Shown here piece after piece: positions 35,075 to 53,462 of a stretch of 64,000 nucleotides of DNA. Location: the NCBI GenBank assembly GCA_965644315.1, contig CBFFRQ010000089.1:744001-808000 (forward strand), in the 5' to 3' direction. The stretch is from Caecitellus pseudoparvulus (lineage: Eukaryota; Protista; Bigyra: Bicosoecida). A program made the translations under genes and the position numbers. Numbering within the stretch: position 1 is the stretch's first letter; each line of letters begins with the position of its first letter. The notes beneath the pieces were generated by a model, which saw only the letters and a list, made by a program, of their open reading frames with translations, did not search any database and had not been told where the DNA came from.

Positions 35075-38000
35075 ATGAAAGGAAGCCCGCTCACATTGGT
35101 GCTGGTCGCCGCGTGCGCCATCTCCAGCGCGCGAAGCTTGCGGCTGTTCCCGGAAGGCGAGGCGAGAGTTACACCCGTCTCGTACTCTGCGCTGCCCAAC
35201 ACGGGGCCGCGCAGCGTTGTGCGGGCGGCGTCCGGCACTCTCAACGTTTCAGGGGCAACTTCCCCCTTGCACACGGCGCTGGGCGGCGCGGCACTGTCTG
35301 TGCAGCGGGAATGGCTGCGGTGGGACTTCAATGTCTCCCTGGACACCTCCAGGCCCAGCCCGCCCACGGCATTGCCGCCGCTGCCCCCAGGGGCTGCCTT
35401 TGCCCACCACAGCGCATGGGTGGCAGGGGGCACTGTGGAGTGGGAAGGCCACTCTGCCAGCCTGCCTGCTCTGAACACCTCCACAGTGTACGGTGCGTCC
35501 ATGCAGAACTTCAGCCTGGGCGCTGCCGGGCTGCTGGGCGCGCTGGACCACGGCGAGGGCGGCATGCAGGCTCGCCTGGCCGAGGCGGGCAACGTCATGG
35601 CGCGCTTTGAGATGTCGTGGAATGGCTTCAGCATGGAGCCGTCCATGCAGGTGAGCCACCTGCGTGTGTGGCGGGGGGGGCAGTGGGTGCACGTGCACGG
35701 CCCCACGGTGTGCACGGGGGTGGTGGTGGGGCACCCCCTCTTCAACGCCAGCCTGTTCGAGGAGTTCACGCCGGAAGTTGGCCCAGAGCACCCGGGCACG
35801 TTTTCAGTGCCGGTGCACCCCCTGCGGGTGACTGTGCACTGCGACGCAGCGGCCATGTTCCTGTCCACTGTGGAGCAGCGGCTGTTGACGCACTGGGCGC
35901 GGGAGTGGCCCTCCCCGCCGGTGCTGAACCTGCACAGCGTCCGCTTGCACTCCCTGGCGCCATGGGTGGAGGGGGTGGGGGGTCTGGGTGCTGTGCCTGC
36001 AGAACCGTCAGCTTGGCCAGCCTTGGAGCGAGAGGGGGCTGCGGAGCGGGCGTCCATGGGCATTCCCCTGCGCACCAACTCCGCTGGCGTCGTGCAGCTG
36101 TCCATGGGAAAGGAACACATGTGTGCATTGCTGCAAGGTGGGACAGTGCGGTGCTGGGGCGAGGGCGGTGCGACTGTTGCGGTGGGGTACGGTGCGGGGC
36201 GCCTGGGCCAGGGGAACACGGACGATCTTGGTGCTGACATTTCTGTGACTGACATTCCAGACATCGCCCTGCCGGGCCCGGCAGTGTGGGTACAAGCGGG
36301 GTCATTCACAACGTGTGCGATGCTGGTTGGGAACCGGCTGCACTGTTGGGGCGACAACTCCGAGGGGCAGCTGGGGCTGAGCCACATGCAGCCTGTGGGG
36401 GCCAGCCCAGCGTCCATGCCGGCAGAGGCGGAGGTGCCGCTGCCTGCGGGGGACGTTGTTGTCAAGATCGGGCTTGCAGCCACGACCACCTGCATGCTGA
36501 CCAGCGTCGGGGAAGTGAAGTGCTGGGGGTCCAATTTTCACGCTGGCTACGGCCTTGGCCCCAGCGGGCTGGCTTTCCGAACAGGTGGCTTTGTGAGTCG
36601 AACAGCTGCACACTCTAGATCAGCAGTGCTTTCGGGCCCAGCACTTGACATTCAGGCCGGAACTGGCCACTTTTGTGCTCTGTTGACGGAAGGGCGCGTG
36701 CAGTGCTGGGGCTTGGCGGGCGAGTTTCCCCCGTTCTCAGGGGGCTCGGGCCAGCTGGGCTACGGACAGACTGCATTTGGCATGTCCCCATTCACAAACT
36801 TAGGCGACAACGAGACACCTGCGTCTGTCGGCCCAGTGCCCATTGGTGCGTACGCAGTGTACCTCTCGAGCGGAACGTTCCACAACTGCATCGTCACGGT
36901 GGAGGGCAAGGTGCGATGCTGGGGGGCGAACAGAGATGATGGCTACGGCTACGGTGAGTCAGGCGGTGGCCGCCTTGGCATTGGTATGTATCCCCCTGGT
37001 GCGTCGGGCTGGGATGATGCGAGCGTCGGTGACGATGAACCAGCGTCTGCCGCCCCCTTCATTGAACTACCAGCACCCGCAGTCAAGGTAGCCTGCGGAC
37101 ACATCCACTCCTGTATTTTGCTTGTGACCAATGAAGTCGTGTGTGTTGGCGTAGACACTGACGGGGTGCGTGCGAGGGGCTTCAACCAGGTGGCAGCGGA
37201 TTGGAATCGGTTTGTACCCCAAAGGAAGAAAAACATCAAGGGCGCGACAAACTTTCGCATGGGGCCTGTGCTGATGCCCGGAGCAGCTGCCGATGTGCAT
37301 GCAGGGCTTATCAATGCGGGATTTGAGTCGTACGGCGGCGTCTTCCAGGTCTCAGCTTCCCCCACCACTGGCATCACCGGCAGGGGCAGCCTTGCAAACT
37401 CGCTGGGAGACAACGAGTGGCTGTCACAGACGGGCTTTCTTCCCGAGGCACGGCACCAGGCCAGTATCAACGTCCAGCCGAGCATCATTGGCAACTTGCG
37501 CTTGACGCCAGCGAAGTATGGTGAAGCTGCTTCGGTCCGACTGGGCTTGGACGGCGGGTGCATTCTGACCACTTGGGGCGGCATCAAGTGTTGGGGCGAC
37601 CCACGGTATAACATAACAGGGTTCAACACTGCCGATTATTTACCAACAGGTGACGTGTACGGGGATGATGAGTTGCCATGGAACTCCGCCGGGCTGAACA
37701 TTCCTGATGGTGCGGTGGACATCGCAGCGGGGGCCAGAACAGTTTGCGTGCTCTTCGACGCGACTGAGTTCGGGAAAGTCCTCGCCTCTTCCTCACACGC
37801 GTCAAGGAATGTTGCTTGCTGGGGGGACAACAACGGCCTCGCATCCACTGGTGGGCAAGGTTTTGAAGGGCAGCTTGTGCCATTTAGCGGCGACTCCTCA
37901 AGTCATGGCAGCCACTTGCCCGCGAACTGGCTGTCATTTCCCTCCCCAGCCGTGAGGATTGCTGGCAAGTTCCACCACTACTGCATCATTGATGCGACAA

Positions 38001-41000
38001 AGCACGTGCTCTGCTGGGGAGACAACTCCAAGGCGCAGCTTACACATGGAACTAGATCAACACAATACGTAAGTCAAGCCACACGGACTCTGCTCATGGG
38101 TGGCCATGGTGCTGTTGATGTTTGTGCTGGCGAGGAACACACGTGTGTAATCCTGGACGATGCAAACTCGACGGTTCAGTGCTGGGGCAGTCACTCCCAA
38201 GGTCAGCTCGGCTTGAACATTCACGACCTCATTACCGGGGGGCACGTTTCTGCCTCTTTCTGCTCATCGCAGTACAATTGTCACCTTTCGCGGGATGAGG
38301 TGTCCACAATCGGGTGGGGCGTGCCATTGAACGGGAGCCAGCCCGTCTCCCTTACCTGTGGGCTCGCCCACACGTGTGCTGTCTTTGCTGATGGAGGAGT
38401 CCAGTGCTGGGGCAAGAATGCTGCGTGGAAGTACCTCAACGCTGGCGCATCAGTCGAGCTCTCGGTCATCGAAGCAACCACGCTGGGAATCAAGCACGCC
38501 TCAACAACCAGCCGTCCTTTGCCTGGGGGTGGGCTTACGGAGGAGAATTCTCACGTGGGAGATGATGAGTACCCCTCGCAAATGCCACAAGTGCAGTTGT
38601 CAGGCAAAGCAATTTCAGTGGATGCGACCGAAACCCACACGTGCGTGCTGCTGGAATCGGGCCAGATACAATGCTGGGGTGATGGCCGCCTGGGTGAGTT
38701 GGGAACCGAATCTGCGCAGCTTGTTGGGGATGACGAACACCCGTCAGACGTCGGCCCGGCGCACATTAGCGGCACGTTCAAGCAAGTGTCCACTGGTCTG
38801 CACCGCACGTGTGGTCTGAGAACTACCGGGCACGTACGCTGCTGGGGTTCCATCTCTCGAGAGAGCCCGCAAACCTATCAACTGGCATCTATCCGCCCAG
38901 GCGACACCGACAGCGATGAGGGCACCCTCCGCAAGATTGGAGACGTGCGCTTCCAAAGGTGGATCCGAGGCCCAACTGACATGCAGCTTGACTTCTCTTC
39001 GTACCTTAGCCCGGTCGGACTTGCCCCGCAGCTTCACCTGGTCGGCTCAGTTGTTCAGTGGCGAGCCGTGACCCAGGTCCGAACTTGCACAGCACGCGTC
39101 TGTTCGCTTGCCGGCTTGGGTGCACTGCCGTCGTGGATGGTCAACCTGATGTTGGGGGCCTACGAAGTAGACCTGCCGACACTGCCTGCAGCAGCTACCT
39201 CCGCAGGGCAAGGAAGTGTCTGCAGCCTGCTTGGCTTGCCTACCCTCGATGCAGAAAAGGTATGCGACGCATCTTCCACATGCACAAGGGCAGCCCTGGA
39301 CTCTCGAAACTCCCAGTGTCAGAACGATGACTGGGTGCACACTTGCATGTGGCCAGCCCTTGACGTCTCGCCATCCTTGCTGCGCTTGGACTCCGTCTCA
39401 GCCTCTGAAATCGTGCCTGGCGTCCGCGTTCCATCTCAAGGTGGAAAGGTGTACATCAACGGAGAATTTTGGTCCTTGCGCATGCTCAGTAGCCTCCCAC
39501 TGAATCTCACTGTCCGCTTTGGAAGTGAGTCTGCAGTTTGTGATTCCGCTGCTTTGCAGAGCCACACCTTGATCGAGTGCTTTGCGCCTCCAGTTCCTCC
39601 CGTACCAGTGTCTGCCGGGCTTGTGGTCGAACTGCACCACACAGTTCCGGGCCTTCCCTCACCATTCAAGGAGGAAAGTGTCAAAGCCTTCTACTTGCCT
39701 CCGCGACTCATTGTCGCATACCCTTCGGCAGACATCCCGAACACTGGAGGGTTGGTAGCCCTGGAAGGAGACCACTTCGGGAGCGGCTTCCCTTCAAGCA
39801 TGGCCCAGACCACTTATGTGATTCTCGTGCCTGTTGGTGGGAGCTCTGACTGCAGCCAAGTGAATCCGATGCTCGGATCGAGCGTTACCATTGAGGCGCA
39901 GCCAGCACCGACTGTTGAAACCTTGACAATCTTGCTTCCTCCAGGACAACAGGGGGCCTGCATTGCAGTGCAGGTGGCGGATCAAAGGTCAAATTGGCTG
40001 CCTCTGCAGTACCTACAGCCTAGCCTAGATTCAGTGACACCGTCTACCTTTTTGCGGCCTGATGGCCCTGGGCAAGCATTTGGGACCTTCGTTTTCAGGG
40101 GTGTGAATCTCGCCGAGCCATCGTTTTCCCTGAGCGGGAAAGTCGGCAATGCCTCTTGCTCACACATGATACGGGTGTCCAGCTCGATGGTGAGCTGCTT
40201 CGGCGTAGACCTTTACCGAGCGTTTCCAACGGCATTCGAAGGACTCATTTCTTCTATTACACTACAGTACACAGTTAGAATTGGCACCCAATCGCTCGTG
40301 CAAATCAAGCCGAACTTGGCCACGGGCATCAATTCCATCCGTGTCTCGTCAGTTGCTGGCTTCCCTGTTCCCCTGGTGGGCGGCGAAATCACCATCTACG
40401 CGTCTGGCCTCACTCGCCACGAAGGCACCATCGCCGCTGACACCAGGCGCCACGGCAACGAAAGCGACATTGAAGCGGTGACGCTGGGTGACGGTGTGCC
40501 CTGCAGCGACATCCGCACTCAGGGTGGGCAGCTGTGGTGCACCGTGCCGCCGGGCACCGGGTCCCTGTCCCCCGTGTACATACGCCGTCTCAGCAGTGGG
40601 AGCGCGACCTTTACGCAGAGCCAGATGCGGTACGCCGACCCAGAGCCCAGCGCAGTGCAGAGTCCCAGCATATCCGCTGCTGGGAATGAGACGCTGTCCA
40701 TCGTGGGGCTGCACTTCGGCAGCCGGGACGCGCCCCACATCGTGCGGGTGCGTGTGGGGGACGCTGAGTGTGCGGGTGTGGAGGTGGTGTCCAGCACGCT
40801 GGCGCGTTGCCGGACGCCATCTCTGGCTGAGGCAGGGGTCACTGCGGAGGCAGTGGTGTCAGTGCAGTCGTTGAGTGGGAACTGGACGGCCTTGACCCAG
40901 CCTGTGGTGTACTTGACGCCGACAGTGCTGGCTGTGGAGGGTGGTGCCATGTTGTGGGGGGCGCAGCGTCTGCTGCACACGTTCTCCATCGTGGGCTTGT

Positions 41001-44000
41001 ACTTGGGCAACACAGAGCTGCTGGTGGACGGTGTGTCGGACGTTGGTGCTGGGGTGGGCGTGATGCGCTTCACTGTGGGCAGCAGCGGTGCTGGGCTGAG
41101 CTGCCGAGAGGCGGGGGGGCGGTTGACGCTGGAGGAGCGAGACAGCAGGCAGCGGTACTCATGTGAGGACATGGATGTATCTCGACTGCCTCGGCCTGCG
41201 GATGGCACGACTGTGGAAGTGTCAGTGGCGGTGGAGAGCAACGATGGTGTGGTCGTGCCAGTGGGTTCAGGCAGTGCCTCGTTGATGGGCACGCCAGTGG
41301 TGCGCAGTTTGATCCCACGGACAGGCGCAGCGGGGGCACCTGTGACGGTGCAGGGGGCAGGGTTTGGCGTGAGTGCGGGGGATGTGCTGGGTGTGACAGT
41401 GGGGGGGCACCCTGCGCCGTCGGTGGAGTGGACGGCGTCCAGCAGCTTGACGTTTGTGTTGCCGGACTTGAACACGACGGACCCTGTGGCGCTGAGCGGG
41501 TTGCGTGTGTCGGTGCTCATGCGGAGTGGCGCAGAGTCTGTCGGTGAGGGGGCAGACGGCGACGTGTTCAACTACGCCATTCCGCCACAGCCGCCTCGAG
41601 TGGCGCCCCAGCTGCTGTGTGTGCGTCGTGACATCACGGGTGCGACGCGTGTGGCGTTTGGGTGGGATGACGATGACGTGTCGCGGCTGGTGGGTGTGAG
41701 TGCATGGGTGGTGGAGGTGGGCCCATGGGGCGGGGGGAGCGAGGCCCGGCCTCAGACGCTGGTGTACGCAGCAGAGCCAGGTGCGGCAGCTGCCGTGACT
41801 CAGCTGCAGGCACTGGATGTGGAGTGCTACGTAGGTGCTTGGCCGGCGCCGTCTGTGAATCGCACAGCCGTGGCGGCTGCTGTGGCGGCACGCAGTCCAG
41901 ATGGCAGCTACCAGCGTCTGGTGGAGATCACGATCCCGGGTCTGAGCGCTGCGCCGCTGTCAGTGCGTGTGCGGGGCAGCAGCGACATCAGCAGCCGGCA
42001 GCAGGATGGGCCAGCGTCACGGGCGGCCGGGCCAGTGTTTGAGCGGTGTGGCACAGATGCCTTCCTTGCCACACACGAGATTGTCGAGGGGCGCACGAGC
42101 CAAGCGGTGTGCCGGTCCTGCCCTGTGGGGGCGGTGTGTGGCGGCCTGCCGTGGGAAGGCATGCGTGCGGCGCGGGGGTACTTCCGTGTGCCCTGGGGCG
42201 AGTCGGGGTTGACCTTTTCACCCTGTCGCAGTGATGCGGCATGCCCTGGTGAGCCGCCGGTGGTGCCGTTGCAGGCTGTGTGGTTGGGCGCTTCACGGCG
42301 CCGGGCACTGGGTGCGGGCGCGAATAGCAGCCAGGACCTGTGCCTGGATGCGGGGTGCTTGGGGCAGCGCAGTGAAGCGCAGGCCGTGCCTGTGGAGTTC
42401 CTGGGCAGCATGGTGGCTGTGCCCGAGGAGCTGGGGCAGCACAGCGCCAACAGCACTGTCAGCAGCGGAAGCGCCGGGCAAGAGCAGTGTGCAGTGGGGC
42501 ACACGGGCGTGCTGTGCGAGACGTGTGCTGTGGGGTATGGGAAGGTGGGGTCTGACGAAGTGTGCACTCAGTGCCGGGGCGGGCAAGCAGCCGCTGTGGC
42601 GCTGTTGGTGGCGGTGGTGGTGCTCGTGGCGGCAGTGTGTGGCTTCCTGGCGTGGTCGTCGCTGTCGCAGGCAAAGGCCAACGAGGGCACGGCCATCCAG
42701 AAGATCGGCCTGAACCACATGCAGCAAGTGGCGCTGATGGGGTCCTTTGCGCTGCAGTGGCCTGATCCGTTCCTGTGGCTGATGGACTTCTTCGACACGG
42801 CGTCCAGTGGCAGCACGGGGTTCTTCTCCATGGACTGTGTGCGCCCCGACAGCAGCACCCTGGACACCAGCGGCCTGAGCACATTCCAGCTGAAGACGTT
42901 GATGGTGTTCTTGTTGCCCTTCATTGTGCTGGCGTTGGCGGGCTGCGTGCTGGGCATAGCTGTGCTGGTGCGGCAGGTGCGGCTGGCGCGGGCGCGGCAG
43001 TTCGGGGTGGTGTTCCTCTTCGTGACGCTGTTCATGCTGTACACGTCCTTCATCCGCGCGGCGATGCAGCTGTTTGCGTGCGAGGACGTGGGGGGCGAGG
43101 CGTACCTGTCGGCGGACGTGTCAGTGCCGTGTCGTGGCACAGAGGCGTGGCGGTTTGGGGTGGGTGTGCCGACGTTGTTGTTGTTTGGGGCGGCGGCGCC
43201 TGTGGGTGCAGCGTGGATGCTGTCGCGTCGGCGGTCCAAGCTGTACACGAGCGACTGGCACAAGGCGACGCTGGGCTTCCTGTACATGGGGTACACTGAG
43301 GAGACGTTCTGGTACGAGTCTGCGGTGTTGTTGCGCAAGGCCGTGTTGGCGGCGGTGTTGATACTGACGACGCCGATGGGCCTGCTGTGGCAGGTGTCCG
43401 GGGCGCTGGCTGTGATTTTCGGCGCATCACTCCTTACTGCAACCCGTGTGCCGTTCCGCAACAAGACAGCGAATCGACTTGAATTGGTCAGCCTCGCGCT
43501 TTCTATTCTCACGCTTGTTGGCGGCGTCATGCTTTACGATATTGCTTCACGAGAGGTGCAAACTTCGTCGCATTTTGACATTGCATCTGTTATTTCGGTG
43601 ATGCTGACTTTGCTGAACGGTATCTTCCTCATCACCACCCTTGTCATTGTGCTTCGTGCCCGTGGGTCCCAGATCTTGGATGTTGCCAAGAGTGCAGCAG
43701 CTCCCATCGGTGCGCTTGTGAAGTCGGCATCGCTGCGATTTAGCGGGGCAGCTTCAGCGTCCGAGCCGCCGCCCAAGCTGAGCGGCCAGCGCATGTCACG
43801 CAGGCCATCCCTCACACCCCAAGCCCCGCCAAGTCCCAGAGAAGCAGTCACATCAGCTGGAGACCCCACTGGCCAAACAACTGTGTCTGTTCTGCAAACA
43901 GCCCGAGAGGGGCGTGTGATGAAAGCAAGCGCTGCCAAGGGTGCTCAGACCAGTGCGCCAGCTTCGCCCTCCCAGGTGTATGAAGTGAGAAACCCCATGG

Positions 44001-44170
44001 CTCGTGGGGTCTGGGATGCAAACAAGGAACCCGAGGCTCAGCGCAAGGGGAGCGCGCCAACCAAGGTTCAGCGCAAGGGGAGCGCACCAACAAGGGTTCA
44101 GCGTCCACCGAAACCCGCGACGATCCCCATGCCACCAACAAGCAAAGGACCATTCCCTCCTTCAAAGTGA
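35075..44170 (+). CDS. Giant (3031 aa) intronless surface receptor-like protein, copy 1: signal peptide, unknown N-domain, RCC1/BLIP-II-like repeats, IPT/TIG domains, Cys-rich region, ~9 TM, cytoplasmic tail
   Basis: Signal MKGSPLTLVLVAACAISSA; many H(T/F)C....G.V.CWG....GQLG repeats; IPT-type units (GNETLSIVGLHFG..VRVGDAEC..VSSTLARCRTP); C-x2-C-P-x-G-A-x-C and CAVGHTGVLCETCAVGY; TM block with KIGLNHMQ..WP and LGFLYMGY...WYE...LRK. Confidence 0.88.
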   Translation: MKGSPLTLVLVAACAISSARSLRLFPEGEARVTPVSYSALPNTGPRSVVRAASGTLNVSGATSPLHTALGGAALSVQREWLRWDFNVSLDTSRPSPPTALPPLPPGAAFAHHSAWVAGGTVEWEGHSASLPALNTSTVYGASMQNFSLGAAGLLGALDHGEGGMQARLAEAGNVMARFEMSWNGFSMEPSMQVSHLRVWRGGQWVHVHGPTVCTGVVVGHPLFNASLFEEFTPEVGPEHPGTFSVPVHPLRVTVHCDAAAMFLSTVEQRLLTHWAREWPSPPVLNLHSVRLHSLAPWVEGVGGLGAVPAEPSAWPALEREGAAERASMGIPLRTNSAGVVQLSMGKEHMCALLQGGTVRCWGEGGATVAVGYGAGRLGQGNTDDLGADISVTDIPDIALPGPAVWVQAGSFTTCAMLVGNRLHCWGDNSEGQLGLSHMQPVGASPASMPAEAEVPLPAGDVVVKIGLAATTTCMLTSVGEVKCWGSNFHAGYGLGPSGLAFRTGGFVSRTAAHSRSAVLSGPALDIQAGTGHFCALLTEGRVQCWGLAGEFPPFSGGSGQLGYGQTAFGMSPFTNLGDNETPASVGPVPIGAYAVYLSSGTFHNCIVTVEGKVRCWGANRDDGYGYGESGGGRLGIGMYPPGASGWDDASVGDDEPASAAPFIELPAPAVKVACGHIHSCILLVTNEVVCVGVDTDGVRARGFNQVAADWNRFVPQRKKNIKGATNFRMGPVLMPGAAADVHAGLINAGFESYGGVFQVSASPTTGITGRGSLANSLGDNEWLSQTGFLPEARHQASINVQPSIIGNLRLTPAKYGEAASVRLGLDGGCILTTWGGIKCWGDPRYNITGFNTADYLPTGDVYGDDELPWNSAGLNIPDGAVDIAAGARTVCVLFDATEFGKVLASSSHASRNVACWGDNNGLASTGGQGFEGQLVPFSGDSSSHGSHLPANWLSFPSPAVRIAGKFHHYCIIDATKHVLCWGDNSKAQLTHGTRSTQYVSQATRTLLMGGHGAVDVCAGEEHTCVILDDANSTVQCWGSHSQGQLGLNIHDLITGGHVSASFCSSQYNCHLSRDEVSTIGWGVPLNGSQPVSLTCGLAHTCAVFADGGVQCWGKNAAWKYLNAGASVELSVIEATTLGIKHASTTSRPLPGGGLTEENSHVGDDEYPSQMPQVQLSGKAISVDATETHTCVLLESGQIQCWGDGRLGELGTESAQLVGDDEHPSDVGPAHISGTFKQVSTGLHRTCGLRTTGHVRCWGSISRESPQTYQLASIRPGDTDSDEGTLRKIGDVRFQRWIRGPTDMQLDFSSYLSPVGLAPQLHLVGSVVQWRAVTQVRTCTARVCSLAGLGALPSWMVNLMLGAYEVDLPTLPAAATSAGQGSVCSLLGLPTLDAEKVCDASSTCTRAALDSRNSQCQNDDWVHTCMWPALDVSPSLLRLDSVSASEIVPGVRVPSQGGKVYINGEFWSLRMLSSLPLNLTVRFGSESAVCDSAALQSHTLIECFAPPVPPVPVSAGLVVELHHTVPGLPSPFKEESVKAFYLPPRLIVAYPSADIPNTGGLVALEGDHFGSGFPSSMAQTTYVILVPVGGSSDCSQVNPMLGSSVTIEAQPAPTVETLTILLPPGQQGACIAVQVADQRSNWLPLQYLQPSLDSVTPSTFLRPDGPGQAFGTFVFRGVNLAEPSFSLSGKVGNASCSHMIRVSSSMVSCFGVDLYRAFPTAFEGLISSITLQYTVRIGTQSLVQIKPNLATGINSIRVSSVAGFPVPLVGGEITIYASGLTRHEGTIAADTRRHGNESDIEAVTLGDGVPCSDIRTQGGQLWCTVPPGTGSLSPVYIRRLSSGSATFTQSQMRYADPEPSAVQSPSISAAGNETLSIVGLHFGSRDAPHIVRVRVGDAECAGVEVVSSTLARCRTPSLAEAGVTAEAVVSVQSLSGNWTALTQPVVYLTPTVLAVEGGAMLWGAQRLLHTFSIVGLYLGNTELLVDGVSDVGAGVGVMRFTVGSSGAGLSCREAGGRLTLEERDSRQRYSCEDMDVSRLPRPADGTTVEVSVAVESNDGVVVPVGSGSASLMGTPVVRSLIPRTGAAGAPVTVQGAGFGVSAGDVLGVTVGGHPAPSVEWTASSSLTFVLPDLNTTDPVALSGLRVSVLMRSGAESVGEGADGDVFNYAIPPQPPRVAPQLLCVRRDITGATRVAFGWDDDDVSRLVGVSAWVVEVGPWGGGSEARPQTLVYAAEPGAAAAVTQLQALDVECYVGAWPAPSVNRTAVAAAVAARSPDGSYQRLVEITIPGLSAAPLSVRVRGSSDISSRQQDGPASRAAGPVFERCGTDAFLATHEIVEGRTSQAVCRSCPVGAVCGGLPWEGMRAARGYFRVPWGESGLTFSPCRSDAACPGEPPVVPLQAVWLGASRRRALGAGANSSQDLCLDAGCLGQRSEAQAVPVEFLGSMVAVPEELGQHSANSTVSSGSAGQEQCAVGHTGVLCETCAVGYGKVGSDEVCTQCRGGQAAAVALLVAVVVLVAAVCGFLAWSSLSQAKANEGTAIQKIGLNHMQQVALMGSFALQWPDPFLWLMDFFDTASSGSTGFFSMDCVRPDSSTLDTSGLSTFQLKTLMVFLLPFIVLALAGCVLGIAVLVRQVRLARARQFGVVFLFVTLFMLYTSFIRAAMQLFACEDVGGEAYLSADVSVPCRGTEAWRFGVGVPTLLLFGAAAPVGAAWMLSRRRSKLYTSDWHKATLGFLYMGYTEETFWYESAVLLRKAVLAAVLILTTPMGLLWQVSGALAVIFGASLLTATRVPFRNKTANRLELVSLALSILTLVGGVMLYDIASREVQTSSHFDIASVISVMLTLLNGIFLITTLVIVLRARGSQILDVAKSAAAPIGALVKSASLRFSGAASASEPPPKLSGQRMSRRPSLTPQAPPSPREAVTSAGDPTGQTTVSVLQTAREGRVMKASAAKGAQTSAPASPSQVYEVRNPMARGVWDANKEPEAQRKGSAPTKVQRKGSAPTRVQRPPKPATIPMPPTSKGPFPPSK
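35177..36531 (+). repeat. Inverted repeat block A, left arm (pairs with 51940-53294)
   Basis: Reverse-complement match on a constant diagonal (coordinate sum 88471). Near-identical, with scattered substitutions and short variable patches after ~36230. Confidence 0.9.
40334..43405 (+). repeat. Inverted repeat block B, left arm (pairs with 45039-48110), 3072 bp
   Basis: Same coordinate sum (88444) at both ends, so no net indel. About ten substitutions found by eye, three of them non-synonymous (SVAG/SVSG, CEDM/CVDM, GSGS/GAGS). Confidence 0.95.
44038..44103 (+). repeat. 30-bp coding tandem repeat (~2.2 copies, QRKGSAPT[K/R]V) in the copy-1 tail
   Basis: tcagcgcaaggggagcgcgccaaccaaggt tcagcgcaaggggagcgcaccaacaagggt tcagcg. 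Confidence 0.85.
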
Positions 44171-44315
44171 GCCACTTCTCTTTTTGCATGGGAGTCTCGC
44201 GAACAGCGAGCTTAGAGTGTCGCTCATACAATGCATTTTGTAGATATGTAGGTCGGCTCCAATCGAGCGCGGAGCCCAGTGCGCTCCCAACATCCATCAG
44301 TGGCAGGAATGCAGC

Positions 44316-47300
44316 TCAAACCCCAAGTTTAGAGCCCTGTGACTGCTTTCGAACTCGAGACTGCCGTCGCATGCTTCGACGAGGAGTTGGCGCTTGGCGG
44401 TCTTGCCCAACGGTTGCAGCCCCACCTAACTGCCGCCCCAAAGGGTTCTGAATCTGGTAAGTGTCCAATGGGCTTATGTGGGCTTTGGGCTGTGACTCCT
44501 GACCACCTCCAGACCCGAGCACTGGCAGAGTTGCTTTTGACTGGGGGTGAAGCACCGATGTCGGAGGTGGTTGCTTGGCTGGTGCTGCTTTCAGCACACT
44601 CGCCGATTTCGGAGCAGCCTTGGAGGCAACAGGCGCGCTTTTGCCTTGGCCTCGGCGCAGCGGAGCCCCAACGAGCGTGCGACTTGAAAGCGATCGGAGG
44701 CGCGAAGATGCTCTGCGAAGGAAGCGGGCCACAGGTTTGTCAGACTGCTCTGCCAGCTCAACCAGGGCTGCTGCCCGTGCCCTGAGAACAGTCCATACAA
44801 CAACTGCAAAGAACAAACAGTTCAGAGCAGTCAAGACGACGGAAATAGCGATGGCAGACGATGGGGCTACGTTGGGCCCTGACGGGGAGCTCTGCTGATC
44901 GATATCATACAGCATAACGCCTCCAGCCAGCGTCACAATTGACAGGACCAGGCTTGCGATCTCAAGATGATTCGACACTTCCGAGCGGTACGGTAGGCGC
45001 CTCGCTGTGAGCACAGAGCAGAAAACTAGAACCATCAACGCCCCGGACACCTGCCACAGCAGGCCCATCGGCGTCGTCAGTATCAACACCGCCGCCAACA
45101 CGGCCTTGCGCAACAACACCGCAGACTCGTACCAGAACGTCTCCTCAGTGTACCCCATGTACAGGAAGCCCAGCGTCGCCTTGTGCCAGTCGCTCGTGTA
45201 CAGCTTGGACCGCCGACGCGACAGCATCCACGCTGCACCCACAGGCGCCGCCGCCCCAAACAACAACAACGTCGGCACACCCACCCCAAACCGCCACGCC
45301 TCTGTGCCACGACACGGCACTGACACGTCCGCCGACAGGTACGCCTCGCCCCCCACGTCCTCGCACGCAAACAGCTGCATCGCCGCGCGGATGAAGGACG
45401 TGTACAGCATGAACAGCGTCACGAAGAGGAACACCACCCCGAACTGCCGCGCCCGCGCCAGCCGCACCTGCCGCACCAGCACAGCTATGCCCAGCACGCA
45501 GCCCGCCAACGCCAGCACAATGAAGGGCAACAAGAACACCATCAACGTCTTCAGCTGGAATGTGCTCAGGCCGCTGGTGTCCAGGGTGCTGCTGTCGGGG
45601 CGCACACAGTCCATGGAGAAGAACCCCGTGCTGCCACTGGACGCCGTGTCGAAGAAGTCCATCAGCCACAGGAACGGATCAGGCCACTGCAGCGCAAAGG
45701 ACCCCATCAGCGCCACTTGCTGCATGTGGTTCAGGCCGATCTTCTGGATGGCCGTGCCCTCGTTGGCCTTTGCCTGCGACAGCGACGACCACGCCAGGAA
45801 GCCACACACTGCCGCCACGAGCACCACCACCGCCACCAACAGCGCCACAGCGGCTGCTTGCCCGCCCCGGCACTGAGTGCACACTTCGTCAGACCCCACC
45901 TTCCCATACCCCACAGCACACGTCTCGCACAGCACGCCCGTGTGCCCCACTGCACACTGCTCTTGCCCGGCGCTTCCGCTGCTGACAGTGCTGTTGGCGC
46001 TGTGCTGCCCCAGCTCCTCGGGCACAGCCACCATGCTGCCCAGGAACTCCACAGGCACGGCCTGCGCTTCACTGCGCTGCCCCAAGCACCCCGCATCCAG
46101 GCACAGGTCCTGGCTGCTATTCGCGCCCGCACCCAGTGCCCGGCGCCGTGAAGCGCCCAACCACACAGCCTGCAACGGCACCACCGGCGGCTCGCCAGGG
46201 CATGCCGCATCACTGCGACAGGGTGAAAAGGTCAACCCCGACTCGCCCCAGGGCACACGGAAGTACCCCCGCGCCGCACGCATGCCTTCCCACGGCAGGC
46301 CGCCACACACCGCCCCCACAGGGCAGGACCGGCACACCGCTTGGCTCGTGCGCCCCTCGACAATCTCGTGTGTGGCAAGGAAGGCATCTGTGCCACACCG
46401 CTCAAACACTGGCCCGGCCGCCCGTGACGCTGGCCCATCCTGCTGCCGGCTGCTGATGTCGCTGCTGCCCCGCACACGCACTGACAGCGGCGCAGCGCTC
46501 AGACCCGGGATCGTGATCTCCACCAGACGCTGGTAGCTGCCATCTGGACTGCGTGCCGCCACAGCAGCCGCCACGGCTGTGCGATTCACAGACGGCGCCG
46601 GCCAAGCACCCACGTAGCACTCCACATCCAGTGCCTGCAGCTGAGTCACGGCAGCTGCCGCACCTGGCTCTGCTGCGTACACCAGCGTCTGAGGCCGGGC
46701 CTCGCTCCCCCCGCCCCATGGGCCCACCTCCACCACCCATGCACTCACACCCACCAGCCGCGACACGTCATCGTCATCCCACCCAAACGCCACACGGGTC
46801 GCACCCGTGATGTCACGACGCACACACAGCAGCTGGGGCGCCACTCGAGGCGGCTGTGGCGGAATGGCGTAGTTGAACACGTCGCCGTCTGCCCCCTCAC
46901 CGACAGACTCTGCGCCACTCCGCATGAGCACCGACACACGCAACCCGCTCAGCGCCACAGGGTCCGTCGTGTTCAAGTCCGGCAGCACAAACGTCAAGCT
47001 GCTGGACGCCGTCCACTCCACCGACGGCGCAGGGTGCCCCCCCACTGTCACACCCAGCACATCCCCCGCACTCACGCCAAACCCTGCCCCCTGCACCGTC
47101 ACAGGTGCCCCCGCTGCGCCTGTCCGTGGGATCAAACTGCGCACCACTGGCGTGCCCATCAACGAGGCACTGCCTGCACCCACTGGCACGACCACACCAT
47201 CGTTGCTCTCCACCGCCACTGACACTTCCACAGTCGTGCCATCTGCAGGCCGAGGCAGTCGAGATACATCCATGTCCACACACGAGTACCGCTGCCTGCT

Positions 47301-50300
47301 GTCTCGCTCCTCCAGCGTCAACCGCCCCCCCGCCTCTCGGCAGCTCAGCCCAGCACCGCTGCTGCCCACAGTGAAGCGCATCACGCCCACCCCAGCACCA
47401 ACGTCCGACACACCGTCCACCAGCAGCTCTGTGTTGCCCAAGTACAAGCCCACGATGGAGAACGTGTGCAGCAGACGCTGCGCCCCCCACAACATGGCAC
47501 CACCCTCCACAGCCAGCACTGTCGGCGTCAAGTACACCACAGGCTGGGTCAAGGCCGTCCAGTTCCCACTCAACGACTGCACTGACACCACTGCCTCCGC
47601 AGTGACCCCTGCCTCAGCCAGAGATGGCGTCCGGCAACGCGCCAGCGTGCTGGACACCACCTCCACACCCGCACACTCAGCGTCCCCCACACGCACCCGC
47701 ACGATGTGGGGCGCGTCCCGGCTGCCGAAGTGCAGCCCCACGATGGACAGCGTCTCATTCCCAGCAGCGGATATGCTGGGACTCTGCACTGCGCTGGGCT
47801 CTGGGTCGGCGTACCGCATCTGGCTCTGCGTAAAGGTCGCGCTCCCACTGCTGAGACGGCGTATGTACACGGGGGACAGGGACCCGGTGCCCGGCGGCAC
47901 GGTACACCACAGCTGCCCACCCTGAGTGCGGATGTCGCTGCAGGGCACACCGTCACCCAGCGTCACCGCTTCAATGTCGCTTTCGTTGCCGTGGCGCCTG
48001 GTGTCAGCGGCGATGGTGCCTTCGTGGCGAGTGAGGCCAGACGCGTAGATGGTGATTTCGCCGCCCACCAGGGGAACAGGGAAGCCAGAAACTGACGAGA
48101 CACGGATGGAGTTCACTCCAGATGTTGCCCGGGAAAGGGAGGTGACTGACTTCGAATCACCGATCAGCACTTCCAACATTGCAGACACGAAAACCACCCC
48201 GCTTATCCCTGATGCTGGGAAAGCATGAAACAAATCAACATTCTGGCATGCTACTTCCCGGATCGAGATGCGTGCGGCCGGTCGACAAGGCGCATTCTCA
48301 ACTTTTCCGTTTAGGACGAAGCCCAACTCTGCAAGGTTCGACCCGATGAACGTGAAATTGGCAAACGCTCGATCCGGCGCATCGGGGCGCAGAAATGCCG
48401 CAGGTTCCACCCTGTTCAATTGCGGCGTTGCGTACCCAAGATTTTCCCACTCGGAGATCTGGCCAGAAACCTGCACAGCGACACAGAGCCGCTGCTGGCC
48501 GGGAGGAAGCGACGCAAGGACTCTTCGGTTTGATGATTCCGGCGAGGGCAGGACAGGCAAGACAGTCACCGTGGCATTTGCAAGGGCCTGAGGAAAGCCA
48601 CTGCAATCAGTGGCATTGCCAACGGGAGCGACGAGGACGTCGGTTGTGTTGACCAAGTTCTGAGGTGTCCTTCCGCCGAAGTTGTCGCCCACTAGCTCCA
48701 CGACTTGGCCAGCATTCGAAATGCCGTTGGCGGGAGACACGCGGCCCAGAGTTGGCTTCGCGTACACGGCTCTCACTGCAGGGTTGACGACAGGGGAGCT
48801 CAAGACCGGGATGTTGTGCTCCAGTTTGACAGTGAGACCTTGTGAGACATCCAGAGCGGGGACACTCGGCGCGACACACTCGATCAAATCGTGCGAAACA
48901 GTCAGACCCGACTCAAGCCGACACTCTGTTCCGCCATCACCAAGCTCAATGCGAAGGACAGGTTCAATGTTGGAGAGCATGAAGACGGGCCAAAATGCGC
49001 CCTTCAGACTCATCCTCTCGCCTGTTGACGGAATGGTGGGAGAAGTCAACAGGTTCGCACTCGGGACGAAGCTTGAAATGCTGAGAGGGGGCAAACCCCC
49101 CTGGCCAGCTGGCCACAAACAAGTTTTCTTCCAATCATGCAACTGCCCCCTGCTCGAGGAAGGTCCGCAGCCCGCACCGGCGCGGGCACACCATGTCGTT
49201 GCATCGCAGACAGTCTCGGTCAGCGATCTGAAGTTCCGCCCGAAGTATGTCCAGCACACATCGCGTTGTGGATCAGCCATGGCTGCTGCGGGTGCATCGG
49301 GTAGCGTCACCTCGGCTGCACCTTCCATTGTGAACAACATCCACGGAGGCAAGGCGACTAAATCCTGCACAGTGCAGAGCGGGGACGGACAGCTCCTCAC
49401 CTGCGCGACGCTGCGCCACTGCGCGACAGATCCCACAAGGTACAAGTCTGGGTGGAATCCGACTGGTTTGAGGTAGCTGGAAAGGTCCAGTTGCACGTTT
49501 GCAGGGGCTCTCATCCAGCGCTGAAAACGCCGGTCCCCAATACCCTGCAGGACAGCGTTGTCAGCATCATCATCTCCCGGCCGGATGGACGCCAGAGCAT
49601 ACGACAGCTGCTCATCAGGATGCAAGGCTCCCCAGCAACGCATGTGGTGTGAGGCAGTCACGCCACACGTAACGCGCTTTCCAGCTGAGATCTGCTGAAA
49701 AGTGGCAGCAACACGCGCCGGGCCTGCATCGGCTGGGTGCTCGTCGTCTCCGATCAACGCCTTGCTCTCGAGACCCAGGGCGCCGAAGAACCCCTCTCCC
49801 CAGCACTGCACACGCCCGCCTTCGAGCAGTGCGCAAGTGTGCCTGTCGGTGCCATCGACGGCTAGTGCAGCGCCGCTCAGCTGCAGCCGCGGCATGCTGC
49901 TCGGGTGCTCATCATCGCCGACATGAGCTGGGATTGTGAAATTGAGGCCCTGGGGTCCGGTGAGGGACATGTTCGCTGCACCTGCGAGACCAAGGTTCGC
50001 AGCTTCCAAAATGGAGACAGCGTTCTCCGGGTTTGCATCGTAAACATTCCATAAGGCGTTGCTGCCCCAGCACTGAACGCCGCCATCAGCGAACACAACG
50101 CAAGTGTGAGAGTGCCCACATCCAATGGATACCGGAACATCCCCATTCAACTGAACAGACACGTTCAGCGCGTTGCCTTGGTCAATGGACCAAGTGCAAT
50201 TGCTTGAACTTGAGCAGAAAGGCTCAATGCTACTATTGGCTCTGATTTCACTGATGGGGATGCCAACCTGACCCATGTTATTGAACCCCCAGCACTGAAC

Positions 50301-53300
50301 GGAGCCCTTACCATCTGCCAGAATTGCGCATGAGTGAAATTCACCAGTGCAAATGTCGACCGCCCCCGCTCCACCAAGGAGGCGGCGCCGCTGGGCAGCG
50401 TGAACGGGCAGATCGGAGCCCGCACTGTGCCCACACTGCCCTTTGTCATTTTGCCCCCAGCAGATCACGTAGCCTTCGATGTCAATGCCGCAGTAGTGCC
50501 GCCAATGCCCCGCAAGCTTTGCCAGGGGAGCAGTGAAACCCAACCAGTTGTTCGGGAGGTAGGCAAACAGGGCTGTGCCGGGCGGAGCAAAAGGCGCCTC
50601 AGCAGTCCCGTATGGAGTTTGTGTCCCCAGGTTTTTTCTGGTGTTCCTACCCCAGCAGACAACGTTGTGCGATGCTTGCTGGGGGAAAGCGACAATCCCC
50701 GCAAAAGCTACTGGGTCAAACAAGATGCACACTGACTCCTTTCCTGGCACGACGTCCACTGCACCATCTGGTACGTTCAAGCCGACGGAGTCCCACGGCA
50801 GCTCGTCATCTCCATACGTGCTGCCTGTTGGGAGGAAGTCCTCAGGCTTGAAGCCCAGCAGGCCAAACCGAGGCCTGCCCCAGCACTTGACCCCGCCCCA
50901 TGTGGTGAGCGCACAGCCAAAGGAATGCCCCATGCGCACCTTGGCCACTTGGTCACGAGTGGAAGGTTTCAGCCTCAAGTTAGAAATGTAGGCGGACTGG
51001 CTAGGAAGATGCCCAGAGGTCGGATCCGGAGGGCCGGCCAGGAAAGGAGTGTGAGACAGCCACTCGTTGTCCCCGAGTGAAGTCCCAGTGTTGCCGTTGC
51101 CATGAATGCCAAATCCAGCAGTCCCTGAAACTTGAAACCCGCCGCCTTCCAAGTCGAAGGCTGCGTTAATATACCCAGCATGCACGTCAGCGACTCTGCC
51201 TGGGAGGGGAATGGGTCCCATGCGGAAGTTCGTGTCCACGTTGAGCTCGTTTGCTGCAGTGTTCACCCTGTTCCAAGCGGGCACTGCTGTGTGAAAGCCC
51301 CAAGCCTTGACGCCAAGGTTGTTGCCGCCGATGCACACCGCTTCACCGGTCACAAGAAGAATGCACGAATGCATGTGGCCACAGGCTACCTTGACTGCCG
51401 GTGCTGGTAGTTCAATGAAGGGGGCGGCAGACGCTGGTTCATCATCACCAACGTTGGCATCTGAAAAGTCGCTCGCTCCAGGTGGGTAAACTCCGATACC
51501 AAGGCGTCCTGCGCTTTGTCCTCCGAGTGCGCCTTGTCCGTTCGCCCCCCAGCATCGTACACGGCCTTCCGTGTTGATGATGCAGTTGTGAAAGCCTCCC
51601 ACCGAAAGCGACACCGCATATGCACCAATAGGTACTGGACCAAGAGATGCTGGCGTCTCCATCATCCCCATGAAGGGAAGCGAGAACGCGCCAAATGCAG
51701 TCTGTCCGTAGCCAAGCTGGCCTTCCCCGCCGCTGAATGACGCAAGTGACCCTGCGTACCCCCAGCAAATCACACGCCCCTCAGTCAACAGAGCGCAGAA
51801 ATGTCCGAACCCTGCTCCTATGTCAAGGGCCGCAGCACCGAGCACGGCAGGCCTTGCCTGGGATGCAGTGAGCCCTGGCGAGCCCCCGATCTGAAACCCA
51901 GTTCCACTTGGGCCAAGGCCGTAGCCTCCCTGAGCTGTAGACCCCCAGCACTTCACTTCCCCGACGCTGGTCAGCATGCAGGTGGTCGTGGCTGCAAGCC
52001 CGATCTTGACGGCAATGTCCCCCGCAGGCAGCGGCACCTCCGCATCTGCCGGCATGTACGCTGGGCTGGCCCCCACAGGCTGCATGTGGCTCAGTCCCAG
52101 CTGCCCCTCGGAGTTGTCGCCCCAACAGTGCAGCCGATTCCCCACCAGCATTGCACATGTACTAAAAAGGCCCGCTTGTACCCACACTGCCGGGCCCGGC
52201 AGGGCGATGTCTGGAATGTCAAGCATGGACTCGGTGCCGCCAAGGTCGTCAGTGTTTCCCTGGCCCAGGCGCCCCGCACCGTACCCCACCGCAACAGTTG
52301 CCCCCCCCTCGCCCCAGCACCGCACTGCCCCCCCTTGCAGCAATGCACACATGTGCTCGTTGCCCATGGACAGCTGCACGACGCCAGCGGAGTTGGTGCG
52401 CAGGGGAATGCCCATGGACGCCCGCTCCGCAGCCCCCTCTCGCTCCAAGGCTGGCCAAGCTGACGGCTCTGCAGGCACAGCACCCAGACCCCCCACCCCT
52501 TCCACCCACGGCGCCAGGGAGTGCAAGCGGACGCTGTGCAGGTTCAGCACCGGCGGGTAGGGCCACTCCCGCGCCCAGTGCGTCAACAGCCGCTGCTCCA
52601 CAGTGGACAGGAACATGGCCGCTGCGTCGCAGTGCACAGTCACCCGCAGGGGGTGCACCGGCACCGAAAACGTGCCTGGGTGCTCTGGACCAACTTCCGG
52701 CGTGAACTCCTCGAACAGGCTGGCGTTGAAGAGGGGGTGCCCCACCACCACCCCCGTGCACACTGTGGGGCCATGCACGTGCACCCACTGCCCCCCCCGC
52801 CACACACGCAGGTGGCTCACCTGCATGGACGGCTCCATGCTGAAGCCATTCCACGACATCTCAAAGCGCGCCATGACGTTGCCCGCCTCGGCCAGGCGAG
52901 CTTGCATGCCGCCCTCGCCGTGGTCCAGCGCGCCCAGCAGCCCGGCAGCGCCCAGGCTGAAGTTCTGCATGGACGCACCGTACACTGTGGAGGTGTTCAG
53001 AGCAGGCAGGCTCGCAGAGTGGCCTTCCCACTCCACAGTGCCCCCTGCCACCCATGCGCTGTGGTGGGCAAAGGCAGCCCCTGGGGGCAGCGGCGGCAAT
53101 GCCGTGGGCGGGCTGGGCGTGGAGGTGTCCAGGGAGACATTGAAGTCCCACCGCAGCCACTCCCGCTGCACAGACAGTGCCGCGCCGCTCAGCGCCGTGT
53201 GCAGGGGGGAACTTGCCCCTGAAACGTTGAGAGTGCCGGACGCCGCCCGCACAACGCTGCGCGGCCCCGTGCTGGGCAGCGCAGAGTACGAGACAGCAAT

Positions 53301-53462
53301 AGTTCGGGTCGGGGCGATGGAAGGGGGAAATAATTCAACGCTACCCGCGGTCTTGAGAAGCAGGATCACAACTGCTGCGCTCAGCGTCGCAGGCCAAGGC
53401 TGACGTGAGCTCGTGGCTGATTGGTGCTGCACTGCACCTCGCTTTTGCTGAGCGGGTTTCAT
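44316..53462 (-). CDS. Giant (3048 aa) receptor-like protein, copy 2; inverted paralog of copy 1
   Basis: Same domain order as copy 1. It has its own signal region (MKPAQQ...LSAAVVILLLKTAGS) and its own C-terminal tail. The ORF is uninterrupted. Confidence 0.88.
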   Translation of the reverse strand: MKPAQQKRGAVQHQSATSSRQPWPATLSAAVVILLLKTAGSVELFPPSIAPTRTIAVSYSALPSTGPRSVVRAASGTLNVSGASSPLHTALSGAALSVQREWLRWDFNVSLDTSTPSPPTALPPLPPGAAFAHHSAWVAGGTVEWEGHSASLPALNTSTVYGASMQNFSLGAAGLLGALDHGEGGMQARLAEAGNVMARFEMSWNGFSMEPSMQVSHLRVWRGGQWVHVHGPTVCTGVVVGHPLFNASLFEEFTPEVGPEHPGTFSVPVHPLRVTVHCDAAAMFLSTVEQRLLTHWAREWPYPPVLNLHSVRLHSLAPWVEGVGGLGAVPAEPSAWPALEREGAAERASMGIPLRTNSAGVVQLSMGNEHMCALLQGGAVRCWGEGGATVAVGYGAGRLGQGNTDDLGGTESMLDIPDIALPGPAVWVQAGLFSTCAMLVGNRLHCWGDNSEGQLGLSHMQPVGASPAYMPADAEVPLPAGDIAVKIGLAATTTCMLTSVGEVKCWGSTAQGGYGLGPSGTGFQIGGSPGLTASQARPAVLGAAALDIGAGFGHFCALLTEGRVICWGYAGSLASFSGGEGQLGYGQTAFGAFSLPFMGMMETPASLGPVPIGAYAVSLSVGGFHNCIINTEGRVRCWGANGQGALGGQSAGRLGIGVYPPGASDFSDANVGDDEPASAAPFIELPAPAVKVACGHMHSCILLVTGEAVCIGGNNLGVKAWGFHTAVPAWNRVNTAANELNVDTNFRMGPIPLPGRVADVHAGYINAAFDLEGGGFQVSGTAGFGIHGNGNTGTSLGDNEWLSHTPFLAGPPDPTSGHLPSQSAYISNLRLKPSTRDQVAKVRMGHSFGCALTTWGGVKCWGRPRFGLLGFKPEDFLPTGSTYGDDELPWDSVGLNVPDGAVDVVPGKESVCILFDPVAFAGIVAFPQQASHNVVCWGRNTRKNLGTQTPYGTAEAPFAPPGTALFAYLPNNWLGFTAPLAKLAGHWRHYCGIDIEGYVICWGQNDKGQCGHSAGSDLPVHAAQRRRLLGGAGAVDICTGEFHSCAILADGKGSVQCWGFNNMGQVGIPISEIRANSSIEPFCSSSSNCTWSIDQGNALNVSVQLNGDVPVSIGCGHSHTCVVFADGGVQCWGSNALWNVYDANPENAVSILEAANLGLAGAANMSLTGPQGLNFTIPAHVGDDEHPSSMPRLQLSGAALAVDGTDRHTCALLEGGRVQCWGEGFFGALGLESKALIGDDEHPADAGPARVAATFQQISAGKRVTCGVTASHHMRCWGALHPDEQLSYALASIRPGDDDADNAVLQGIGDRRFQRWMRAPANVQLDLSSYLKPVGFHPDLYLVGSVAQWRSVAQVRSCPSPLCTVQDLVALPPWMLFTMEGAAEVTLPDAPAAAMADPQRDVCWTYFGRNFRSLTETVCDATTWCARAGAGCGPSSSRGQLHDWKKTCLWPAGQGGLPPLSISSFVPSANLLTSPTIPSTGERMSLKGAFWPVFMLSNIEPVLRIELGDGGTECRLESGLTVSHDLIECVAPSVPALDVSQGLTVKLEHNIPVLSSPVVNPAVRAVYAKPTLGRVSPANGISNAGQVVELVGDNFGGRTPQNLVNTTDVLVAPVGNATDCSGFPQALANATVTVLPVLPSPESSNRRVLASLPPGQQRLCVAVQVSGQISEWENLGYATPQLNRVEPAAFLRPDAPDRAFANFTFIGSNLAELGFVLNGKVENAPCRPAARISIREVACQNVDLFHAFPASGISGVVFVSAMLEVLIGDSKSVTSLSRATSGVNSIRVSSVSGFPVPLVGGEITIYASGLTRHEGTIAADTRRHGNESDIEAVTLGDGVPCSDIRTQGGQLWCTVPPGTGSLSPVYIRRLSSGSATFTQSQMRYADPEPSAVQSPSISAAGNETLSIVGLHFGSRDAPHIVRVRVGDAECAGVEVVSSTLARCRTPSLAEAGVTAEAVVSVQSLSGNWTALTQPVVYLTPTVLAVEGGAMLWGAQRLLHTFSIVGLYLGNTELLVDGVSDVGAGVGVMRFTVGSSGAGLSCREAGGRLTLEERDSRQRYSCVDMDVSRLPRPADGTTVEVSVAVESNDGVVVPVGAGSASLMGTPVVRSLIPRTGAAGAPVTVQGAGFGVSAGDVLGVTVGGHPAPSVEWTASSSLTFVLPDLNTTDPVALSGLRVSVLMRSGAESVGEGADGDVFNYAIPPQPPRVAPQLLCVRRDITGATRVAFGWDDDDVSRLVGVSAWVVEVGPWGGGSEARPQTLVYAAEPGAAAAVTQLQALDVECYVGAWPAPSVNRTAVAAAVAARSPDGSYQRLVEITIPGLSAAPLSVRVRGSSDISSRQQDGPASRAAGPVFERCGTDAFLATHEIVEGRTSQAVCRSCPVGAVCGGLPWEGMRAARGYFRVPWGESGLTFSPCRSDAACPGEPPVVPLQAVWLGASRRRALGAGANSSQDLCLDAGCLGQRSEAQAVPVEFLGSMVAVPEELGQHSANSTVSSGSAGQEQCAVGHTGVLCETCAVGYGKVGSDEVCTQCRGGQAAAVALLVAVVVLVAAVCGFLAWSSLSQAKANEGTAIQKIGLNHMQQVALMGSFALQWPDPFLWLMDFFDTASSGSTGFFSMDCVRPDSSTLDTSGLSTFQLKTLMVFLLPFIVLALAGCVLGIAVLVRQVRLARARQFGVVFLFVTLFMLYTSFIRAAMQLFACEDVGGEAYLSADVSVPCRGTEAWRFGVGVPTLLLFGAAAPVGAAWMLSRRRSKLYTSDWHKATLGFLYMGYTEETFWYESAVLLRKAVLAAVLILTTPMGLLWQVSGALMVLVFCSVLTARRLPYRSEVSNHLEIASLVLSIVTLAGGVMLYDIDQQSSPSGPNVAPSSAIAISVVLTALNCLFFAVVVWTVLRARAAALVELAEQSDKPVARFLRRASSRLRSLSSRTLVGAPLRRGQGKSAPVASKAAPKSASVLKAAPAKQPPPTSVLHPQSKATLPVLGSGGGQESQPKAHISPLDTYQIQNPLGRQLGGAATVGQDRQAPTPRRSMRRQSRVRKQSQGSKLGV
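45039..48110 (-). repeat. Inverted repeat block B, right arm
   Basis: Reverse complement of 40334-43405. Confidence 0.95.
51940..53294 (-). repeat. Inverted repeat block A, right arm
   Basis: Reverse complement of 35177-36531. Confidence 0.9.

Follow-up and report, generated by a model that had tools for sequence, protein, structure and literature searches.

The window analyzed here is a 64,000-nucleotide (nt) stretch of the genome of Caecitellus pseudoparvulus (assembly GCA_965644315.1, contig CBFFRQ010000089.1, hereafter C89, positions 744,001 to 808,000 of the forward strand). Two giant intronless genes for membrane proteins converge in it, and along their length segments that are nearly identical between the copies alternate with segments that have diverged to synonymous saturation. 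The explanation that we consider highly probable is an old inverted duplication, followed by recurrent, region-restricted, GC-biased gene conversion between the copies. A preliminary description of the locus had proposed such homogenization as the minimum and an inversion-based receptor-shuffling system as the stronger case.

Divergence along the gene pair

The arms of block B (Table 1; coordinates are those of the window) differ at 10 of 3,072 positions (0.33%), with 7 synonymous and 3 nonsynonymous changes in 1,024 codons, and their synonymous divergence (dS) is 0.009. The variable ectodomains, in contrast, are saturated at synonymous sites (dS about 2.4; nonsynonymous divergence [dN] 0.51) and share about 50% protein identity. 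The last transmembrane (TM) helices and tails are likewise saturated, with about 30% protein identity between the tails. Block B is sharply bounded on either side, ungapped identity dropping from about 100% to 25 to 60% inside one 25-nt window, and its right edge cuts through a predicted TM helix at a point where there is no domain border. The preliminary description, which had counted about ten differences by eye, had noted abrupt edges, and had suggested a comparison of dS, was accurate on this block. In block A, we counted 67 differences in 1,391 bp, arranged as a gradient: identity is 98% over the first 924 bp and 89% over the last 467 bp, where dense patches of differences occur. dS rises from about 0.04-0.05 to about 0.24-0.27 in the 5'-to-3' direction, and the right edge is a gradual decay. 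The earlier account of block A as a near-identical segment of ~1.35 kb thus holds for its first 924 bp and overstates the similarity in its 3' third. A distance of 1.6 kb separates the arms of block B, and one of 15.3 kb separates those of block A.

Near-zero dS in the blocks cannot be explained by constraint on the protein. In the ectodomain, genes 1 and 2 are each other's nearest relatives (50% protein identity, versus at most 41% for other members of the family), and this sister relationship, together with the saturated dS, indicates that the duplication is old and that the blocks were homogenized afterwards. A recent duplication followed by hypermutation was rejected on account of the dN/dS of about 0.2, the indels, and the 50% protein identity of the variable parts, all of which fit an old divergence. 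We found no silent donor copies of the variable ectodomain in the genome, where the next match has at most 41% protein identity; with no donor for the ectodomain and a central segment that is single-copy in the genome, the locus does not qualify as a case of cassette-donor antigenic variation. The GC content of third codon positions (GC3) is 0.79 in block B and 0.80 in block A, compared with 0.62 in the variable ectodomain and 0.51 to 0.58 in the last TM helices and tails; the window as such is GC-rich (about 0.58 to 0.71).

The three dense patches of block A (36232-36249, 36301-36313, and 36532-36544, mirrored in 51904-53294) carry 8 to 12 differences per 13 to 18 nt, and each alters 2 to 5 residues within or beside RCC1 repeats, in the RCC1 loops. 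Templating of these patches from elsewhere was ruled out within the 64-kb window, which holds no further copy of them even when 3 mismatches are allowed. The patches resemble islands of divergence left standing by conversion.

Both genes lie in open frames without interruption, at 34949-44170 on the plus strand (3,073 codons) and 44316-53501 on the minus strand (3,061 codons), and their stop codons are 145 bp apart (44171-44315); these coordinates confirm the two tail-to-tail open reading frames (ORFs) of ~3,000 amino acids (aa) first described. From N to C terminus, both proteins consist of a signal peptide, an ~300-aa domain without assignment, RCC1 propellers, an IPT/TIG stalk, a Cys-rich region (DUF7630), a multipass TM module, and a low-complexity cytoplasmic tail, the Pfam domains detected in the pair being RCC1, WD40_RLD, TIG, and DUF7630. 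The variable part comprises the RCC1 propellers and about 480 residues without domain assignment, and the Pfam-significant IPT/TIG domains sit in the constant block B. Of the diverged RCC1/IPT ectodomain of the preliminary description, the RCC1 part therefore stands, and the IPT part does not. The repeat finder also retrieved two smaller inverted stretches of 123 to 220 bp in the ectodomains, at 74 to 75% identity. The inverted repeats at the locus are all paralogous coding homology, and none is a short specific recombination site.

Table 1. Features of the convergent gene pair, in window coordinates
Feature	Position	Strand	Content or basis
Gene 1 (from first ATG)	35075-44170	+	Intronless giant membrane protein, 3,031 aa; open frame, Pfam, hydrophobic segments, TM-module model
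Gene 2 (from first ATG)	44316-53462	-	Convergent sister paralog, 3,048 aa; architecture as in gene 1
Block A, left arm	35177-36567		1,391 bp; 95% identical to 51904-53294
Variable ectodomain, gene 1	36568-40333	+	RCC1 propellers and region without assignment
Block B, left arm	40334-43405		3,072 bp; IPT/TIG stalk, Cys-rich region, first part of TM module
Central unique segment	43406-45038		1,633 bp; last TM helices and tails of both genes, 145-bp spacer
Block B, right arm (inverted)	45039-48110		Repeat finder, alignment
Variable ectodomain, gene 2	48111-51903	-	Counterpart of 36568-40333
Block A, right arm (inverted)	51904-53294		Repeat finder, alignment

Copy number, assembly, and related strains

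Near-identical inverted repeats of 3 kb are difficult to assemble, and blocks A and B might be a collapsed or copy-pasted consensus of dispersed paralogs, a danger to which the preliminary description had itself pointed. In the 30.6-Mb assembly (215 contigs), block B has exactly two copies, and the next-best DNA matches, which belong to other family members, are 77 to 79% identical over only 99 bp. We examined public runs as Logan k=31 contigs and unitigs and compared word depth between the blocks and the unique flanks. In the probable source run, the unique flanks have a depth of 86 and block B one of 158; a second, independent sample from this organism gives about 41 to 49 and about 85, respectively. 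The ratio of 1.8 to 2.0, and no higher, is that of two real copies. In the independent sample, arm-specific alleles at 41459 and 41647 occur near 50:50, each at half depth, which together with the twofold depth contradicts a consensus of many paralogs. Unitigs for both ectodomain-to-B junctions were found in the source run and in the independent sample, as was a central unitig of 1,693 bp (43376-45068) that ends 30 nt inside the repeat on both sides. The de Bruijn graph is that of a true two-copy inverted repeat. An assembly artifact is largely refuted, and we assign almost no probability to a consensus from dispersed paralogs. The point that speaks for caution at such loci is the adjacency of ectodomain and tail: the k=31 contigs end at 40334/40356 and 43405, and this pairing is given by the assembler alone. 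As the unitigs end inside the repeat, the assembled orientation of the central 1.6 kb is not fixed by the graph.

At 42134-42171, on the most conserved Cys-rich motif, the source run holds two 54-bp contigs at single-copy depth, with 3 to 4 differences; the same interval is the sole DNA-level match to three paralogs on contig C8.

Two further runs hold related strains. In run X5, whose relative is 2 to 6% diverged, block B forms one 3,071-bp contig that corresponds exactly to 40334-43404, with neighbors that overlap it by k-1, and differs from the genome at 57 positions (1.9%). Run X10 yields a contig of 1,154 bp with its end likewise at 43404 and a divergence in block B of about 1.5%. These contig ends suggest that the edges of block B are shared. 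The divergence between lineages in block B, as read from bubble-popped contigs of these mixed-looking runs, is 1.5 to 1.9%, versus 0.33% between the arms; a relation of this kind is classically read as concerted evolution (compare PMC3403216, Figure 3). These observations bear on a simpler history, in which a single recent conversion or segmental replacement of 3 kb, and an earlier one of 1.4 kb, took place with no continuing homogenization. Such an event would likewise yield sharp edges and near-zero dS, and blocks A and B clearly differ in age (dS 0.05 to 0.27 versus 0.009). However, the same edges occur in runs with relatives that are 1.5 to 2% different in block B, which exceeds the difference between the arms here, and the GC3 excess described below is not expected from one event. 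We therefore regard a one-off replacement as unlikely.

In run X10, the summed contig depth over the gene 2 tail (44125-44912) reaches 300 to 1,150, versus 50 to 70 nearby; this peak may reflect similar low-complexity sequence of another organism at the 88% threshold.

Homogenized blocks, GC3, and the membrane module in the wider family

A search of the genome with the C-terminal module, such as the preliminary description had recommended, retrieved at least 40 giant open frames of 2,000 to 5,000 aa. Comparison of seven genome regions with family members for repeats revealed mosaic homogenization in four clusters besides the C89 pair: a head-to-head pair on C40 (inverted repeat of 1,646 bp, 98.5%), a head-to-head pair with a third gene on C50 (inverted repeats of 5,168 bp and 666 bp, 98%), a tandem triplet on C8 (95 to 99% identical), and a tandem pair on C68 (4.8 kb, 97%). 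No homogenized block was found in the head-to-head pair on C52. In residue numbers of gene 1, the homogenized block spans 1753 to 2778 on C89, 2305 to 2880 on C40, 1839 to 2907 on C68, and from before 1668 to beyond 2880 on C50. These borders vary by cluster and so define no fixed cassette; the homogenized core that the clusters have in common is simply the most conserved module. The tails are still diverged in three of the four clusters with a homogenized TM module (C89, C40, and C68). On C50 (66718-96468), the third gene, which is convergent, has only a 547-bp patch (98.7%) in common with both members of the pair, and this patch begins nearly at the position homologous to the left edge of block B. 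Family members with identical query scores occur at C149:58502-60547 and C199:21949-23994, and C199, a contig of 43.8 kb, may duplicate part of C149 or be a haplotig of it.

The elevation of GC3 follows conversion status across these clusters. In 100-codon windows of the five clusters with blocks, GC3 is 0.74 to 0.84 where identity is at least 93% and 0.57 to 0.64 otherwise; the C52 pair, which has no block, has a mean GC3 of 0.61. The plain contrast between block and flank was replaced by a position-matched control, in which homologous segments are compared by conversion status. Homogenized and nonhomogenized versions have GC3 values of 0.70 to 0.79 and 0.57 to 0.65 in the stalk, 0.75 to 0.86 and 0.62 to 0.67 in the Cys-rich region with TM1 to TM5, and 0.73 to 0.81 and 0.54 to 0.62 in the last TM helices (C52 being set apart there, as discussed below). 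At codon positions 1 and 2, GC content stays level whether or not a segment is converted. Raised GC3 is an accepted mark of repeated conversion and was used in the fugu protocadherin clusters to establish repeated regional conversion (PMC1852091). The excess of about 15 to 20 points in the converted segments of five clusters needs many biased events and argues for long-running conversion over a single copying. Within this family, GC3 is thus usable as a marker of conversion history.

We modeled the Cys-rich region and TM module, the latter in the region 42440-43750, on the basis of 17 family sequences (pLDDT 80, pTM 0.78). Foldseek retrieved no solved structure at an E value below 0.08 (TRPC5, TM-score 0.11), and the best VIA-align Z score of 7.7 is within the noise for helical bundles. 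The model superimposes on clusters of the ESM Atlas from many eukaryotic phyla with a TM-score of 0.80 over 400 residues, and the language-model similarity to clusters of the Ephrin_rec_like/DUF7630 type is 0.94 to 0.95. In a cluster matched at a TM-score of 0.80, 78% of the members carry Ephrin_rec_like and only 12% carry PF06011. Another cluster, matched more weakly (TM-score 0.49), has members from giant viruses (Nucleocytoviricota). The diverged tails match PF06011 at 19.6 and 20.8 bits (E = 5e-4 and 2e-4), below the gathering cutoff of 28.5 bits, and an interpretation of the module as a TRP channel was therefore not adopted. Solved structures of canonical TRP/PKD2 channels gave no match. 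The proteins may act as receptors, channels, or adhesins. Judged from sequence, the propellers outside the cell, the loop patches that differ between the copies, and the diverged tails would fit paralog-specific recognition and output.

Outside this genome, a protein search with the C-terminal region found no orthologs and only distant full-length relatives, P0019 to P0021, at 25 to 27% identity; the whole-length search was dominated by bacterial RCC1 proteins. On the metagenome contig Ga0307982_1000227 (1-6055), a 2,019-aa gene without a Pfam match lies upstream of the 3,307-aa P0019 on the same strand, and none of the genes called within 10 kb of P0019 on its contig is an inverted partner. 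Neither a protein pattern nor an exact 23-mer taken from the end of block B had a match among metagenome contigs, a collection that may lack near relatives. A marine metatranscriptome, run X14, contains 30% of the words sampled from 39200-45100, a hint of transcription of the pair, or of close relatives, in the sea.

Conversion, inversion, and parallels in known systems

On the basis of these observations, we propose that a giant gene of the RCC1-IPT-multi-TM type underwent an ancient tail-to-tail inverted duplication, and that homologous recombination between the copies led to nonallelic gene conversion confined to blocks A and B. Conversion would be frequent in block B, with its closely spaced arms, and rarer or not recent in block A. 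The flanking ectodomain and tail would be too diverged to pair, which would halt conversion there; as conversion cannot enter diverged flanks, the edges would stay fixed and sharp. Selection may also keep the ectodomain and tail distinct. A GC bias of conversion would raise GC3 in the blocks, and a rare crossover resolution might now and then flip the central 1.6 kb, or else the inner 15.3 kb, as an unprogrammed side effect. We infer the recombination mechanism, the recurrence, and the timescale of conversion; the two-copy structure, the near-zero dS in the blocks versus saturation outside, the link of GC3 to conversion status, and the recurrence of this pattern in further clusters of the family were observed directly. 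The more modest claim of the preliminary description, namely, that conversion keeps the scaffold uniform while ectodomain and tail remain distinct, is accordingly well supported by the contrast in dS, the twofold depth, the GC3 rise in five clusters, and the edges shared with related strains.

Several points weigh against recurrent conversion. The depth of block B in X5 and X10 is about 0.7 times that of the flanks, not 2 times, and since these runs look like strain mixtures in which bubbles were popped, the comparison across strains supports conversion only indirectly. In the C52 pair, which is unconverted, GC3 is 0.73 to 0.75 in the last TM helices, the sole exception of the position-matched control, and in the first control the TM module was GC3-rich in several members of undefined conversion status; GC3 is hence not fixed by present conversion alone. 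Moreover, the present data are compatible with frequent crossovers.

The last point leads to the inversion switch, in which crossovers in either block or in both would create four in-frame combinations of promoter and signal region, ectodomain, and last TM helices with tail, to be used as isoforms. The geometry permits it, with arms of 3,072 bp at 99.7% identity only 1.6 kb apart, and in silico flips of 43406-45038, of 36568-51903, or of both leave two open frames of 3,068 to 3,081 codons, so that the earlier claim of four in-frame states is correct. Homologous recombination between inverted repeats sometimes resolves as a crossover, and with repeats of 3 kb rare flips are to be expected. The divergence of the tails in three of four clusters with a homogenized TM module also counts in favor of a switch. 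We found no positive evidence for a shuffling system, however. A Pfam scan of eight flanking ORFs in the window found no recombinase or transposase domain, the domains detected being those of housekeeping proteins (GST/metaxin-like, glutaminase-ankyrin, Nup155-type nucleoporin, kinase, and kinesin). The arms are long coding homology without short sites, the tandem arrays on C8 and C68, which are unable to invert, share the mosaic and the GC3 rise, and the borders vary between clusters and here split a TM helix. Unitigs stop at the repeat edges, which leaves both orientations without read support. We therefore consider a programmed switch very unlikely, and hold equally improbable the idea that crossovers are frequent enough for a clonal population to hold all four combinations, with selection maintaining the edges for this purpose. 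If it were true, a marine protist would have in recombination a means of joining the recognition modules of its giant surface receptors to other output modules.

With recurrent conversion as the favored explanation, the locus offers a clean and quantified example of concerted evolution confined to parts of a gene. The family concerned is large and has hardly been described; it consists of giant surface proteins of a marine protist with extracellular RCC1 propellers. Neighboring genes retain a uniform membrane-proximal stalk and membrane module, while the propeller ectodomain and usually the tail diverge. Phylogenies of the family must leave out the converted segments.

Among known systems, the R64 shufflon with Rci and inversion of the Hin/Gin type rely on a dedicated site-specific recombinase that acts at short, specific sites. 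They resemble the C89 pair in that an inversion within coding sequence would here exchange C-terminal segments in frame, but the window has no recombinase domain in the flanking ORFs scanned and no such sites. Proteins of the Ephrin_rec_like/DUF7630-PF06011 type resemble the pair in that the TM-module model superimposes on their clusters and both tails match PF06011 weakly, below its cutoff; a difference is that the ~2,400-aa multi-RCC1 ectodomain is common to very few database proteins (P0019 to P0021).

The palindromes of the primate Y chromosome show low divergence of paralogs within a lineage and normal divergence of orthologs between lineages (PMC3403216, Figure 3). The C89 pair is alike in having exactly two inverted arms that are >99% identical around a unique spacer, as borne out by the depth ratio, and crossovers would again be a side product. 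It differs in that Y palindrome arms measure tens to hundreds of kilobases, compared with 3 kb here, and in that its arms are subsegments of genes with old, diverged sequence both inside and outside them, which makes it a mosaic palindrome.

A further close parallel in sequence pattern is provided by the teleost protocadherins. In fugu and zebrafish, neighboring paralogs are >99% identical, synonymous sites included, in part of the coding region, while the recognition ectodomain stays diverged, and GC3 is significantly higher in the homogenized part (PMC1852091); conversion in these genes was also described by Noonan et al. 2004, as cited there. Regional homogenization, a diverged recognition part, and raised GC3 recur in the five clusters described here. 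Protocadherins, however, are encoded in vertebrates with tandem variable exons of about 2.4 kb, whereas the protist genes are intronless, ~9 kb long, and arranged head to head, tail to tail, or in tandem, and the homogenized part includes a multipass membrane module. In the C89 pair, the last TM helices and the cytoplasmic tail escape homogenization as well. The parallel suggests a general route by which receptor repertoires keep a common chassis and diversify recognition. The locus thus belongs to a known phenomenon, regional gene conversion among clustered genes of a receptor family, which here is partly palindromic.

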